Positions 2,788-18,087 of a DNA stretch of 18,266 nt are shown piece by piece. The first letter of the stretch is position 1. Every line of letters starts with the position of its first letter. Source of the DNA: Zygophlyctis sp. KS116 (lineage: Eukaryota > Fungi > Chytridiomycota). Location: the NCBI GenBank assembly GCA_054661495.1, contig BAAFSQ010000199.1:1-18266 (forward strand), read 5' to 3'. Below the pieces are notes generated by a model. That model was not told where the DNA came from. It did no database searches and saw nothing but the letters and a program-made list of their open reading frames with translations. Position numbers and translations under genes: made by a program.

Positions 2788-3935
2788 TTAACGCCATTTT
2801 CTGTATTTTACAAAATCACTTAAACGCTCACAAGTACAATCTCCACAATACCATTCACCAGTAATTTCTTTTTTATAAAATTCATTAGACAATGAAACAC
2901 ATTTCCCATGGAACCAACCAATTTTACACTTGGAATTACTGCATTCGATCATTAATGAATGATCATCTGGCATTTGACAGTAGCAGTATAAAGGATCTTT
3001 AACAATATCTTGATCCATAACTAAAAGTGTCGACTTAATCTCATCTGTTTTTTCTCGAGACCCCTTGAATTTGGGTGTAACGTGGGGTGTTACGGGACCT
3101 TTAAGTTTTTTAATTAATGGCTAGAAAAGATTTAATTATAGAAAACTCACCTTGCGCTCTTTCAATTTCAACGATTTTCCCAGAAAAGTAGTTTTGGACT
3201 TTGGCTTCGTCTTTGGTGACTCCAGATCCAAGGGTAACGCCAAGATCTCTGCATTCTTTTTCTTGAGATCCAAAACCAAGTCCACAACAACCTTCCATCT
3301 AGATTCTTTGAGTAATTCATGAATAAATTCCAAATGTTCGTTATTTTTTTTCCTGTACTCGTAGTAATGCAGTAACTGAGCATCACTTATACTATTGATT
3401 TCAAAGTTTAATGGCAAAGGTGATTTTTCATCTGATCTTGAAACACCTGAAAGCCCAAGAGGTGCTTCAAGCAATTCCACTGATAGACTAGATCTATTTG
3501 ATAATTCATTCATGGATAATGTCCCATCAACTCTAATCTGTGAAATACACGTAGATTCTGAAAGAGAATTAGAAATTTGATAATACTGTTTGACTATTAC
3601 CCATCTTTTAATAATTGATTGAAACGAATCCAAGTCAATAATTGAATAAAACTTCAATTGGAATTTACGATCATTGTATTTACCATAGAGCATTTTGTCT
3701 TTTGAATAGAAACTCAATTTGATTAATTGGACATTTAAATTGGACAAATCAATGCATTCCTTTGAGTTTTAATTTATATAATTACCAGCACAGTTTCTTT
3801 CAGAGAAACATTAATTATTGCGCTAGAATTCTGTTCTTCAACAATTGCTTTTACACAATCGGACACAGATTCCCATTTTTTGTCAAGTGGGGAAAATCTA
3901 GAATACTTTTCAATCTCCCAATAGTGTTTACTCAT
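2788..3935 (-). CDS. REC114: REC114/Rec7-like meiotic double-strand-break factor fused to a C-terminal PHD finger (about 363 aa; exons 3935-3786, 3759-3151, 3120-2788)
   Basis: ATG at 3935 gives MSKHYWEIEKYSRF...KW...VLECIDL...DRKFQLKF...IIKRWVIVK, matching remembered REC114 PH-domain signature motifs. FIHELLKESRWKVVVDLV resembles the C-terminal helical motif. Phase-0 introns 3760-3785 (GTAATT..AAG) and 3121-3150 (GTGAGT..TTTTCTAG) join all parts in frame through to the C4HC3 PHD (LYCYC..MIEC....C...WFH..C...WYCGDC). The PHD call is firm; the REC114 call is from motif memory only. Confidence 0.72.
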
Positions 3936-4175
3936 TACTAAGATTAGGAGAGGCTAAACGATATATTAAATTCGATATAAGAAATATATTAAATCCTTAA
4001 CAATGCATCATCTAATGCATGATCTGTAAATGATGCATGCCCCATAGTTATCAAAGCTTAAGTCTCATAATAGAATCTTTAATGCTAAAGTCAAGTATGT
4101 CGCATCCAATACTTGCATTATTGATGTTAACTTTAACGTTTTATTAGATCATACAAATATTATTGATTTGTAAGG

Positions 4176-7100
4176 CTATTTCCCTTCAGCAATAAAGACA
4201 CCGTCCCAATCACTTTCAGGGGGTTTAATGAGATATTTGGCAGATCTCTCCATCAATGTAGTGCACGGTCCATCTTTATATAAAACTGATCCTTTTTGGA
4301 ATTTTGTTATTGCAGCTTCAAAATTTCGACTCTTATATAATTCTAGACCTTCCTTATATATTTGTATAGCTTTGATAGTATGATCAGTAAGAGGAGTTGT
4401 TTTCTTACCGAGCAATTCAAATAATTTCACAGGTTTTGTTTTACCAGTAACAATTACAGAATCTATTTCACGTACATGGAATAGATTGCTGGTTTCAACA
4501 AAAGTATTTTCAGTAATTAAGATTTCTACTCCATATGCCTTTGTTAATCCTTCAACTCTGGATGCAAGATTAACAGTATCACCGATACAACTATATTCCA
4601 TTCGAGTTTGAGATCCAATATTCCCTGATAATACCTAAAGTTTAAATAAGAATCCTTACAATCCCTGTATTCACTCCTATTCCAATAGCTATTCCTTTTA
4701 ACCCGATTGAATTTCTGTGCTCGTTTAAAATTCTAACTGAATCTTTCATCCTCAAGGCGGCATTGCAAGAATTTACGGGATCTTCCGGAGTACCAAAGGG
4801 AACTCCAAACACTGCCATGACTGCATCTCCTATAAACTTATCTAAAATTCCTTTCTGTTACTATAAAATTGAAAATACCATGCTCTTCTATAATGGCATT
4901 TACAGCACCAGTGAAGTGCTGATTCAAAAGTTCGACAACTTCATGAGGTTCCATAGATTCAGAAATTTTTGTAAATGATCTGATGTCACTAAACAATATC
5001 GAAACATTTTTTCGGGTGCCTCCTAATGTGAAATTATTCTCTTGTAAAACCTGCTTGGCAAGTTCTGGTGACATATATCTTTATAATTAATGATAAATAC
5101 TATATTACCTTCCCAATGTCATCACGGCTTTTTTCTCAGATGAAATATCATCAAACACCAATACAAGACCATTTCTTGATGTTCCTGTTAAAGGCACAAT
5201 TTGATAATTCACAAATGTGGACTTTGCCCCCTTGATTTCATATTCTGACACAAAAATTGGTTGTCCATGTTTAAAAACTGACAAAACGTCATTCAGTAAT
5301 GTTTGGTTTTCTACTCCGATCCATTTATTAATTGGAGAATCCCTCATAATTTCCTCTGTAACTCCTATCGCATTCATAACAAATGGCCTATTCATTGATA
5401 CCTTAATCGTAAAATATTCTAAACTTACCATCCTCATTCCGTCATTTAAAGTTATAACGCAGCTAGTAATTGAAGACAAAATGCTATGCTGATATAGTCT
5501 CATTTCTTCTGTTTTTTGGAATAGTTCTGTTTTTGATAAAGCTACTGCCGCTTGAGCAGAAAATGAACTCAGCATATTTTCATCTTCCCCTGTGAATATC
5601 CCATTCTTCTTGTTGATCATCTGCGTGACTCCGATACATTCACCATCCATATTTTTAATCGGAACGCAAAGTATTGTTTTAGTTACATAACCAGTCTGTT
5701 TGTCTACATCTGAATTGAATCTACTGTCCCGATATGCATCACGAATATTAATTGATTCTATCTTTATTATTATTAATATACCTCCAGACATTAAAACACT
5801 TCCTGCTATTCCTGCGTCCATTTTGATTCTAATCTCTTCGATAGTCTCACGGCCTAATATTTTTGCTACTAATTGTTTTCGCTCTGCATCTTTTAAAAAC
5901 AAAGTACATCGATCTGCGTTCAATAACTCCTTGGCAGATTCCATAATTTTCTTTATGAGCTCATCAAAATCTAAAATAGAAGATAATGATTTAGTAGTTT
6001 CCAGCAAAACTTGTACTTTTTTTCGAGTCTCTGTAATTTTGGCTATTGAACGAGCATTTGTTAGGACAATTGTCAATGTACGAGCCAAAAGCCGCAAGAG
6101 GTATTCATCCTCCTCGTCAAAGCTCTGTGTCATTCCATTATCTCCAAACTTATTAATTAATTCCACAACTGCAAGAACTGGTTCATTTTTCAGAAATATC
6201 GGACATGCCAATATCTGTTCGGGTTTAATGTTAGTCCCGCCAATATCAACAGCAGAATGATATCGAGGAAAATTTAGAGGATCAGCGACATTAATCATCT
6301 CCTTTGTTGCAGCAGCGAAACCAACAATTCCAGAGCCAGCAGGAAATATCTTTCTAGTGCCAAGCATTTGTTCTTCTTTTTCGTTAAAGGTTTTGAGAAT
6401 CAGCTCTCCAGTATTTTGATCAACTTCATAAAATAAAATTAATTCTGCCTGCATCATTTCCTCTGTATCTGCCAAAATTTTTTTCAGAGCATCATCGAAT
6501 TCTATGTCCAGTGATGTAGAGCTAGATGCCATAAGTACTTTATCAATCTTTTCAAATTGCGTAAGAATATGCTTTAATGTTTTTACTCTATTTTCTTGAT
6601 CTGAATTTGCGAATCCTTCTAAAAAAGTTGGCTGATAATACTTTAACAATAGACCATCAATTATAGACTCGTTTTCTAATGAAACGGATCTGTCTTTCAT
6701 AGGTTCTTCCTCTATTATTTTTTGCTTCCTGGGCTTGTTGACGTTTGCATAAGATAAACGCCTGGACGCTTTGGTTTCGGAATTGGATTGTTGTATTCCT
6801 CCGTTTACTATAGACATTTTTCTGTTTAAAATAGCTGTACTTCCTCGCCTTGCTTGACTGGGTAGATCATGTGGATTGTTTGAGCGTACATTTTCCTCAT
6901 CTATCAATGCTATCATATTATACTTATAAAAAATACCTCTTGAAGTAGCAGATGCGGCCTTGAGCAAGTACGGAATTACTCCAAGTCTAGCAAAGAGTTC
7001 ATGTGACTTGTCAATGTTCTCGTATATTGATACCAGTAGAGTGGTTACAAGAGCTTGTATTTCCAAATCTTCTGAAAATGTTTTTAGTATCGGAGACAAT

Positions 7101-12293: not shown

Positions 12294-13280
12294 CTATCCG
12301 ATATTGATACATGGTACAAATCGGTTGTCGAACTTGTTAGATTTCGTAATCATTGGATGAATTGCAATTCCGCAATAAAGAAAAAAATTCTTTGATAATT
12401 GTACGAGTGTTTTACCATTAGAATCTGTAGTCTGTACTGTATATGGAACACTAGTTACTTCCATCAGATCTGATCTTTCGCTTTGAGTCATGCCATTATA
12501 TTCGGCTTCAGTAAATACTCTGAAAAACGATCTTGGTAAGTCTTGATTTACATTTCCAGACAATCTAAAGTGCTGATAGGATGATTTATCAGAACGGTCT
12601 TTACATGCTTCAGGGCCGGTAGGCCATAACTCTGTATTATCACCTAAAGTATTGGCTTTTAGAGAAGTCCCAGAATATCTTCCATTACTGATTCTACCTG
12701 CAGCCAAGCTACCTAATGCTGTAAAGTCTATTTGCTTTCTTGATCTTCCTTCATAACAAGAGATTTTCTCTTTTAATCTAGAAGGCATGTTTTTTGGTCG
12801 TGACCAGATTCCTAGAATACCGTTTCTTTGGTTATTTTGACGTGCCAAATTGAAAAGCATATTGTTCTGACTTGAATCGGGAATTCCAAAGAGTGCTGGT
12901 TCATTTTCAGGGAGTGAAACCGAACCAGTGTCTTCTCCTAGGAAAGCATGCGGTCTGCCTGGTGGAATCAATGGTGACACTTGTTTAGATGGAGTATTTA
13001 ATTTTTGTGGAGGCTGGATATTCACATCAGAGATAATTGGTCGCGGTGGTCCTAAATTCCGTACATTTTTATGTGGTACCTGTGGTGAATTCATAAAACC
13101 TTGAATTTCTTGTTGGGTATTGCCAGAGTGTGTAATAGCATCTGAGAATTCATCTACATTTTCACCCCAAACTGAAGGAGATGGAATTTTGAATACCCGT
13201 TTATCTAGTCCATCCTGATTTTTCAAACAATAGGCCGTCTGAAACAAACAGAGTAGTAAAATGTGGCAAGAGAGAATCAT
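12294..13280 (-). CDS. Secreted protein (328 aa) with putative RNase T1/ribotoxin-like C-terminal domain, paralogue A
   Basis: Signal peptide MILSCHILLLCLFQTAYC, dibasic LDKR site, Pro-rich linker, and a four-Cys domain ending LYCGIAIHP...NRFVPC. Clearly homologous to the neighbouring gene. The fold is an inference. Confidence 0.7.
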   Translation of the reverse strand: MILSCHILLLCLFQTAYCLKNQDGLDKRVFKIPSPSVWGENVDEFSDAITHSGNTQQEIQGFMNSPQVPHKNVRNLGPPRPIISDVNIQPPQKLNTPSKQVSPLIPPGRPHAFLGEDTGSVSLPENEPALFGIPDSSQNNMLFNLARQNNQRNGILGIWSRPKNMPSRLKEKISCYEGRSRKQIDFTALGSLAAGRISNGRYSGTSLKANTLGDNTELWPTGPEACKDRSDKSSYQHFRLSGNVNQDLPRSFFRVFTEAEYNGMTQSERSDLMEVTSVPYTVQTTDSNGKTLVQLSKNFFLYCGIAIHPMITKSNKFDNRFVPCINIG

Positions 13281-13380: not shown

Positions 13381-14332
13381 CTATTTTAATGGTACACATG
13401 GAATATACCCATTATTTCCTTTTTGTTCAGGGTGAATTGCAATTCCGCAGAATAAATAGAAAACATCTTTTACTGATATTCCATCGGTTTGTCGAACTTT
13501 TATGAGATCCTTCTTTGATCCTTTGTATTCCTTTTCCTTATTAAAAACCAAGAAAAATGATCTAACTGCACTTGGTAATTCTTCATCAAACAAATCATAA
13601 TGCTCAAAGAGATCATTGTCACCTTTGCGATTACAAGGATCATCAGCTCCAGGAAATAAATGCCCCTTTTTCCCAAATTGATCTGCAATCTGATCAGCCT
13701 TGAGTTTGCTTCCTTTATAAAGTCCTCTGCTTATTTTTCCAATTTTTAAACTATTTTCAGCAGTAAATATCGCAGTTCCCAGTTTTCCTACCGGACATTG
13801 AAACCGTTTGCCGAGTATTTTCCGTTGTTTACCACTAATCTCTTGAATATCATTGATTCCTGTTACAAACTTTGGAGGACTCCTAATTTTGAGATTATTT
13901 ATTTTTAAATCTAGTTTTACTCGAGTATCCATTTTTTCAGCCAAATTATCTGAATTAATTCGATCCTTTGTGGGTAACTTTCTGCGATAGTTTTCTAGAT
14001 GTATATAATCATAATATTGTCTTTCTAGAGGACTTTTATGGCTTTTGTATGGTGGATCATGGAAATTATCAGTATTGTATTCCATAACTGAGATTTTTCT
14101 AAATCGTTGCCAGATATCAGAAGATGTAATTCTGGGAGTGATTGATCCTACTTGTTAACAATTCTTAAATTATAGATTTACCAACTGACAGTTGTTTTCC
14201 TCTATTCAATGATGTCCGAAACCCTTTCAAAACGGACGATGCACTCCTTTTCTCAAGTCTGCTGTTATCTATACTATCAAGACTCTGTAATGAGAAAACA
14301 ATCATAAAGATCAATCTCCATGAAATCATCAT
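13381..14332 (-). CDS. Secreted protein (305 aa; exons 14332-14182, 14147-13381) with putative RNase T1/ribotoxin-like domain, paralogue B
   Basis: Exon 1, absent from the ORF track, reads MMISWRLIFMIVFSLQSLDSIDNSRLEKRSASS. A 34-nt intron (14148-14181) joins it in frame to MEYNTDN. The domain reads KRFQC...DPCNR...LFEH...VRSFF...LFCGIAIHP...YIPC. Confidence 0.7.
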
Positions 14333-14618: not shown

Positions 14619-15515
14619 TTACTGTTGAATCTTTAATTTCTTGCTGTAGATGAGATTCTTTGGACCAAAGCAGTTTCTGAGTTGAAGGGAATCTTCAATC
14701 TTTTCGACAGTCAAATCTTCGGTAGATGCCCTGGGAGAGATAGATTTGATAGCAGTCATAAACCAAGTAAACCAGCGAAGAATTTCAGTCAAAGAAGAGC
14801 TTGAATTGTATGTTCCATCTTGTCCGATTTCCAATAGACGAGTCGTGGAAGCATAAACGACTCCATCAGTATCAATAGCAAAGAAGCGAAAGAGAAGTCC
14901 ATTGGTAAGAACAGCAAACACAGGAGTCTTTTTTCCAGCAGCCAGACGTTTCTTAAGCAAGCAGCCAGCTTCGGCAAGGACTTGAGGGATTGCACTGTCA
15001 GGCCATTCTTTCTTTGCTTCCACAACCAAAAGAAAAGAGTCCATGGTATCAACAGATTTGGTTTTAGAAGACCCAAACATATAGTCCACATCTCCAGTGT
15101 AGCTGAATCCAGTTCCTTCCCAATCATTCTTTACTTCACAGAAACCCAAAAGTTGGTCATTTGATTCATTCAGTAGAACTTGCGTAAGGATGGCATCAAT
15201 CACAATTCTGCAAGACTTTTCATTGTTCAATACCCAGACATGGTCAATCTTCGCCAAAGTTTCACAAAGCCAAAGACTAGGAGATACTGTTTCGAAATCA
15301 TCAGGGATGTGAAGTGAAGGGGCTTTGACATCAATATAGTCAATGTTCAAGGCTAGACCATCAGGTCTAACACAGTCGTTGAGAGTAGCAGAGGAGAATG
15401 GAACAGAAGGCTTGGTGGAGCCAATGAGAGCCTTGAGACCTTTCTTTTGTTTGTCTGTGAGCTGCTCCTTTTCTTTTTCTGTTAGTTCATTGAGCTTGTT
15501 CAATAGTTGGTTCAT
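14619..15515 (-). CDS. PD-(D/E)XK restriction-endonuclease-fold protein, Crinkler C-terminal REase-like, intronless (298 aa from ATG 15515)
   Basis: Motifs CRIVIDAIL, CEV, TGDVDYMF, LLVVEAKK, AIPQVLAEA and VFAVLTNGLLFRFF. The ATG is in an AAAATG context, and the frame stays open upstream to 15590. Confidence 0.8.
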   Translation of the reverse strand: MNQLLNKLNELTEKEKEQLTDKQKKGLKALIGSTKPSVPFSSATLNDCVRPDGLALNIDYIDVKAPSLHIPDDFETVSPSLWLCETLAKIDHVWVLNNEKSCRIVIDAILTQVLLNESNDQLLGFCEVKNDWEGTGFSYTGDVDYMFGSSKTKSVDTMDSFLLVVEAKKEWPDSAIPQVLAEAGCLLKKRLAAGKKTPVFAVLTNGLLFRFFAIDTDGVVYASTTRLLEIGQDGTYNSSSSLTEILRWFTWFMTAIKSISPRASTEDLTVEKIEDSLQLRNCFGPKNLIYSKKLKIQQ

Positions 15516-15564
15516 TTTAGAATTAGACAATGGTCTATAAATAGAGCGCACAGCCTTTTCCCTA

Positions 15565-18015: not shown

Positions 18016-18087
18016 CTCCCTGGCGGGGAATCGAACCCCGACCACATCAGTGAGAGTGATGTATCCTAACCATTGGACCACCAAGGA
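18016..18087 (-). tRNA. tRNA-Glu (anticodon CTC)
   Basis: 72-nt cloverleaf TCCTTGG...CCAGGGA-G with D arm GTCCAATGGTTAGGAT, anticodon arm CATCA-CTCTCAC-TGATG and T arm CGGGG-TTCGATT-CCCCG, followed by a T-run Pol III terminator. Confidence 0.97.

Follow-up and report, generated by a model that had tools for sequence, protein, structure and literature searches.

The window, by which we mean the whole stretch of DNA analyzed, is a single contig (C199) of 18,266 nucleotides, and the eukaryotic assembly searched along with it comprises 12.7 Mb in 1175 contigs. DNA of this assembly is present in freshwater samples and the host is a lake-dwelling fungus, probably a chytrid, with numerous chitin synthases. 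Its genes have tiny introns, such as one of 25 nt in a conserved motif of the cyclase gene adjoining the gene described here. That gene, a probable REC114 fused to a PHD finger, lies on the minus strand at 3935-2788 and has three exons and 363 codons, with introns of 26 and 30 nt that are both GT-AG and in phase 0. Its neighbours share its strand: a nucleotide cyclase with GAF domains lies 240 nt upstream, and Vps53 is 47 nt downstream. The GAF-GAF cyclase gene itself occupies 4176-7099 (minus strand), has tiny introns (the one of 25 nt at 4635-4659), and is also the upstream neighbour in the relatives L001 and L004. The features of the gene are as follows.

3786-3935, minus strand: exon 1, 50 codons from the ATG at 3935; start of the PH-like domain, with an SSM1-like W-x-I-E-K-Y-S-R-F motif
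3562-3926, minus strand: REC114-like PH domain with intron 1 inside it, about residues 4-116, drawn from Atlas features of the homologues P0002 and P0003 and from a low-confidence model
3760-3785, minus strand: intron 1, 26 nt, GT-AG, phase 0; its position is outside the coverage of the RNA contig
3151-3759, minus strand: exon 2, 203 codons; remainder of the PH-like domain, a short Ser-rich spacer, the helical module and the first half of the linker
3274-3414, minus strand: conserved helical module (alignment A4)
3274-3327, minus strand: SSM7-like segment, putatively for dimerisation and Mei4 binding, from its hydrophobic spacing in four homologues
2989-3267, minus strand: basic Pro/Ser/Thr-rich linker spanning intron 2, about 83 codons; Lys or Arg in 20 of the 73 codons counted
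3121-3150, minus strand: intron 2, 30 nt, phase 0, GTGAGT donor and TTTTCTAG acceptor
2788-3120, minus strand: exon 3, 110 codons and a TAA stop
2836-2988, minus strand: PHD finger, complete Cys4-His-Cys3, with ligands at 2985, 2979, 2943, 2928, 2910, 2901, 2847 and 2838

Much of this model had been anticipated by a sequence-only reading of the window. Intron 2 was confirmed at 3121-3150 with its GTGAGT donor and phase 0, and the open 34-codon linker proposed there is present, as 34 codons from 3120 reach the ATG at 3018. The upstream exon that was said to supply WEIEKYSRF corresponds to 3935-3786 and is closed by the 26-nt intron at 3785-3760, which had not previously been delimited. Exon 1 is 51% identical to residues 26-70 of P0002, the homologue from L001, and also matches L004; P0002 and P0003 are collinear across the site of intron 1, with neither a gap nor an intron. 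The simplest reading is that the ATG at 3935 is the start codon. An 18-codon ATG ORF lies just 5' of exon 1 at 3989-4045 (minus strand), with an in-frame acceptor at 3954; an extra 5' exon is possible, and a GT donor of matching phase was looked for upstream of exon 1 and none was found. Two alternative frames, at 3110-3298 and 3168-3386, had neither homologues nor other support and were rejected.

Several lines of data confirmed that the REC114-like N-terminus and the PHD finger are fused in one spliced gene. In a freshwater metatranscriptome (X20), a 244-nt contig matched 3064-3340 with 0 mismatches and exactly 30 nt missing at 3121, and the sequence of intron 2 was kept in DNA run X11. The RNA support is this one contig, at a depth of 2.2, which ends at 3064 before the finger; past that point the frame continues without a stop. 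The predicted junction at 3121-3150 is therefore seen in RNA, and the contig crosses 3120, so that the transcripts ending before 3120 that had been considered in the sequence-only reading did not occur. Nor did the second case considered there, a PHD expressed from its own ATG at 3018, since that codon is dispensable: in strain L039 it is ATC with the PHD unchanged, and the next Met lies within the finger. Strains L007 and L039 carry a 1-nt insertion within intron 2 (31 nt), while upstream of the ATG at 3018 their exon 2 and linker differ only by in-frame deletions of 3 nt and 9 nt. The insertion inside intron 2 is the sole frame-shifting indel among the strains.

Relatives of the gene add to these observations. 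P0002, which is ~55% identical and has the cyclase upstream, is intron-less at both sites and forms a single frame from the N-terminal WxIEK motif through the linker up to the PHD's first zinc knuckle. In the relative L003 the position of intron 2 is likewise occupied by a phase-0 intron of 30 nt, and L004 is also syntenic. Only this species shows the PHD in full: P0002 diverges from the finger beyond that knuckle, with 47 nt of its contig left, and the L003 and L004 contigs stop ahead of the finger. Conservation of the fusion was thus borne out for the N-terminus, the linker and the start of the PHD, which share one frame in P0002, and not for the complete finger. Three irregularities were noted in the contigs of the relatives. 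The 47-nt tail of L001 (1210-1256) matches neither contig nor window and is either a chimeric end or a true truncation; L003 (1-190) has an opposite-strand ORF rather than PH-coding sequence 5' of the helical module, and is a chimeric contig or a PH-less copy; and L004 has a frame change at ~1652, between its PH and helical parts, that is an assembly error or marks a pseudogene. Homologues of the N-terminal part number only a handful, all environmental. A search with the PHD ORF returned same-species strains only, and a search for further relatives in JGI metagenomes and GTDB gained none. One candidate, P0006, was a chance match and not a homologue.

The finger passed the PF00628 cut-off narrowly (24.5 against 24 bits), and all eight zinc ligands are present in Cys4-His-Cys3 order. 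Its best PDB matches were ING PHDs (E 1e-9), followed by DIDO, PHF2, BPTF and Spp1, nearly all of them K4me3 readers, and its C-x4-C spacing is of ING type. The methyl-lysine cage residues aligned with the sequences of the ING1 and ING2 structures at Tyr 2988, Met 2952 and Trp 2916, in agreement with the ING-type cage (Tyr before Cys1, Met and Trp) that had been read from the sequence. The acidic H3R2 pocket is absent from the finger: the Asp that follows Cys3 in ING is replaced by Ser, and the Glu that precedes the cage Trp is replaced by Gly; in ING2 these residues, which hold H3R2, are D230 and E237. The first loop has the length seen in DIDO, TAF3 and Spp1 and contains P-D-D, an Asp of which presumably occupies the position of the TAF3 cage Asp. 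An aromatic cage with an invariant Trp is characteristic of H3K4me3-reader PHDs, in which loss of the acidic H3R2 pocket weakens binding, although RAG2 and PYGO1 read K4 methylation without such a pocket (PMC3241642). The TAF3 cage Asp residue is described in PMC8246079. Across the strains, substitutions inside the finger were all synonymous except for one Ile-to-Val change.

The closest relatives of the finger are those of the host's own two ING genes, at 42% and 36% identity, which suggests that it may have been captured from an ING copy. The gene is not a misread ING gene, a candidate that was rejected: exons 1 and 2 had no match to the ING domain PF12998, and two full ING genes with PF12998 are found elsewhere in the genome. 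Like ING1-5, Yng1/2 and Pho23, the finger has the C-x4-C spacing and the Tyr/Met/Trp cage, and it differs from ING proteins in that no ING N-terminal domain accompanies it, the acidic H3R2 residues are lost and the first loop is as long as those of Spp1, DIDO and TAF3.

We call the gene REC114-like and a probable orthologue of REC114; that identity is likely, not proven. The exons were searched individually, with P0002 and P0003, relatives whose frame is naturally continuous, serving as stand-ins for the joined protein. An ESM Atlas feature search with residues 20-235 of P0002 was led by REC114-like (0.94, 195 of 256 features), PHS1/Rec114 (0.92) and PHS1 (0.90), and the ten best named matches (10/10) fell in a common family or clan. 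With the PH part alone (P0003) the order was unchanged, at 0.88, with Rec7 ahead of EVH1 families and Inp1; Inp1 and EVH1 clusters ranked lower in the Atlas lists, at 0.75-0.80. Shuffled controls attained 0.9 in 4-10% of cases, but the family matched by the real queries was the one named beforehand. Both Atlas searches represent a single source, with queries from relatives. Exons 1 and 2 may also fit human REC114 motif by motif.

Independent data came from the helical module. In mouse REC114, the residues contacting MEI4 are F230, L231, L235, F240, F243, V244 and V247 (PMC10425845). At 3414-3274, all seven of these positions are hydrophobic, without gaps, in four related homologues; shuffles matched the 7/7 hydrophobic spacing in 5-15% of cases, and in 1-4% with the aromatic in place. 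The SSM7 of yeast Rec114 has a near-invariant F411 and also E419, with exceptions known for the salt bridge (10.1101/2023.01.18.524603). In all four homologues here the F411 position is Trp and the E419 position Leu or Ile. It is because these two residues, conserved and not strictly defining, are not matched that the label was kept at REC114-like, probable orthologue. The order of PH domain, spacer and helices agrees with that of Rec114 (PMC10393190).

Rec114 diverges quickly and HMM searches usually miss it (10.1101/2023.01.18.524603). Pfam scans of the exons and relatives for REC114 (PF15165, PF03525 and PF25349) gave no match, nor did any control match, the family being one that escapes HMMs; genome searches with the same profiles, which are insensitive, likewise gave no REC114 match. 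PDB sequence searches with the N-terminal part gave no REC114 match, and a match to multicystatin was a chance repeat match. AlphaFold, run with one or four alignment rows, reached a pLDDT of 33 and 42, and three fold searches, which showed no REC114 match, used a model too poor for them to weigh for or against the identity; the low-confidence model shows a beta-meander and a C-terminal helix. The locus is single-copy, as a search of the genome with profile A2 returned this locus only, and no better REC114 was found elsewhere in the genome by family searches that are too insensitive for the task. The sequence-only reading had rested the REC114 identity on short motifs. The Atlas ranking and the MEI4-contact spacing now extend the case beyond such motifs, and HMM and structural searches gave no match that would add to it.

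Other components of the meiotic and chromatin machinery were found in the host genome, including Spo11, Set1 and a HORMA gene resembling Hop1 with a PHD match after it (G000:C10:21333-22767; L033, L027). PHDs thus occur on two or more of the host's meiotic proteins. A weak Spp1 candidate, a PHD protein on G000:C123 (L023, 838-1890, minus strand; E 0.003 over 187 residues), is a candidate COMPASS subunit, and with such a candidate present the fusion may supplement Spp1 and not substitute for it. A genome search for Mei4 with PF13971, an insensitive search, gave no match, and one with PF12269 gave no useful match.

What is established, then, is one spliced reading frame encoding a PH-like domain, helices, a basic linker and a PHD that is complete and retains the methyl-lysine cage. 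By analogy with known systems, we consider it somewhat better than an even chance that Rec114, the basic linker and the ING-derived PHD together form a built-in tether that holds the break machinery at promoter nucleosomes marked with H3K4me3. As in known Rec114 proteins, the PH domain would bind a Spo11 partner and the helical segment would dimerise around Mei4 (2:1). Because Rec114 binds Mei4 as a dimer, two PHDs would hang from each complex on flexible basic tethers. The paired fingers would bind promoter nucleosomes carrying H3K4me2/3, with avidity and linker-DNA contacts offsetting the weak H3R2 pocket, and the break machinery would be drawn directly to promoter chromatin, the job done by Spp1 via Mer2 in budding yeast. 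Spp1 dimerisation raises nucleosome binding in yeast (PMC8848140), and it has been predicted that any PHD linked to the break complex would do Spp1's job (PMC5828529). The broader proposal is one that we put forward tentatively and would not yet favour: that Rec114 of this chytrid lineage reads H3K4me3 directly, via a captured ING-type PHD, and is what chiefly guides Spo11 breaks to promoters, by a covalent arrangement that arose independently of Spp1-Mer2 and converged with it in wiring this mark to the break machinery.

The gene shares with Rec114/REC114/Rec7/PHS1 of the RMM complex a probable N-terminal PH-like domain, a spacer, helices with the MEI4-contact hydrophobic spacing, its single-copy state and the company of Spo11 and Hop1 in the genome. 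It differs in that the helices are internal, followed by the basic linker and PHD, that the spacer is ~50 aa and not ~250 as in yeast, and that Trp stands for F411 and there is no E419. The likeness to the Spp1-Mer2 tether, for which CXXC1-IHO1 has been proposed as the mammalian counterpart, would be that of a K4me3-type PHD linked to RMM machinery in two copies per complex; here, however, the link is covalent and Rec114, not Mer2, bears it, the finger is of ING and not of Spp1 type, and the function is predicted. The chromatin-binding region of opisthokont Hop1 (PHD and winged helix) is likewise a PHD grafted on a core meiotic protein, although that protein is the axis HORMA protein, also present in this genome, and there is no winged helix in the fusion; many opisthokont Hop1 proteins have a PHD with an intact cage (PMC10907721). 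Given such Hop1 PHDs, the host's own Hop1 PHD match and the weak Spp1 candidate, the earlier description of the fusion as a third route to hotspot targeting was overstated. A further statement, that some filamentous-ascomycete Mer2 proteins carry a PHD, was unconfirmed, the term "PHD" being absent from the main text of PMC5695089.

Other explanations of the locus bear on each of its parts. Gene callers give two separate ORFs, as though the PHD were a stand-alone gene from the ATG at 3018; the spliced RNA contig, the ATC at that codon in L039 (with the next Met inside the finger) and the one open frame of P0002 led us to reject this reading, the chance of which is close to nil. It is also very improbable that intron 2 is often retained to yield a normal PHD-less Rec114, with the PHD form a minor or regulated isoform. 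Retention would end the protein ahead of the PHD with the PH domain and helices whole, here at an in-frame TAA four codons into the intron and in L003 at a stop at the acceptor, and isoform shares are not readable from contigs. Set against this, the sole RNA contig is spliced, the donor and acceptor are canonical and P0002 lacks any intron at that site.

That the N-terminal part might be another PH/EVH1-like domain, unnamed or of the type in Inp1, PP4R3 or Dcp1, with the protein acting as a non-meiotic chromatin reader, would be in keeping with the HMM and structure searches, the lower-ranking Inp1 and EVH1 clusters, the unretained F411 and E419 and the origin of the transcript in a bulk lake sample. 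We judge it unlikely because REC114, PHS1 and Rec7 stood above every other family in both Atlas searches, the helical module fits the MEI4-binding spacing independently, and quick divergence with HMM failure is usual for Rec114. More plausible, though still doubtful, is a Rec114 whose finger does not select H3K4me3 hotspots and instead contacts a partner protein or the DNA of nucleosomes, or is a weak and dispensable recent addition. The acidic H3R2 pocket is lost and such losses weaken binding (PMC3241642), the PHD of yeast Hop1 binds DNA and not the tail (PMC10907721), the P0002 finger is maybe truncated, and the Spp1 candidate and Hop1 PHD could provide the link. The yeast Hop1 PHD, however, lost its cage, whereas the finger here keeps eight zinc ligands and the Tyr/Met/Trp cage; its strain substitutions are synonymous but for the one Ile-to-Val; and RAG2 and PYGO1 manage without an acidic R2 pocket.

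A chromatin-reading Rec114 would bear on a wider question: in budding yeast H3K4me3 has an established causal role in meiotic break placement, a role that is debated for other organisms (PMC13186367, PMC5828529). If Rec114 is naturally fused to a PHD, evolution would supply separate support for the view that the core break machinery reads this mark, and a targeting module would be shown to be tolerated C-terminal to the Mei4-binding helices. The gene also hints that an early-diverging fungus has a meiotic programme that is intact and transcribed. The architecture is not known to have been described, and our literature search, with subscription papers outside its scope, found no REC114-PHD fusion. 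What is probably new is a PHD fused to a core meiotic factor, the probable Rec114; the parts and the logic are already known from Spp1-Mer2 and the Hop1 PHD.

The remainder of the window held several further features. Two tandem intron-less ORFs at 12294-13280 and 13381-14085 (minus strand) have a common C-terminal F-x-C-G-I-A-I-H-P motif and no Pfam match, and the first begins with a signal-peptide-like stretch. An intron-less ORF of 310 codons at 14619-15551 (minus strand) also had no Pfam match; visual inspection suggests a PD-(D/E)XK-like E-A-K-K motif of the kind found in Crinkler-type nucleases. A tRNA gene (Rfam RF00005) lies at 18016-18087 on the minus strand.
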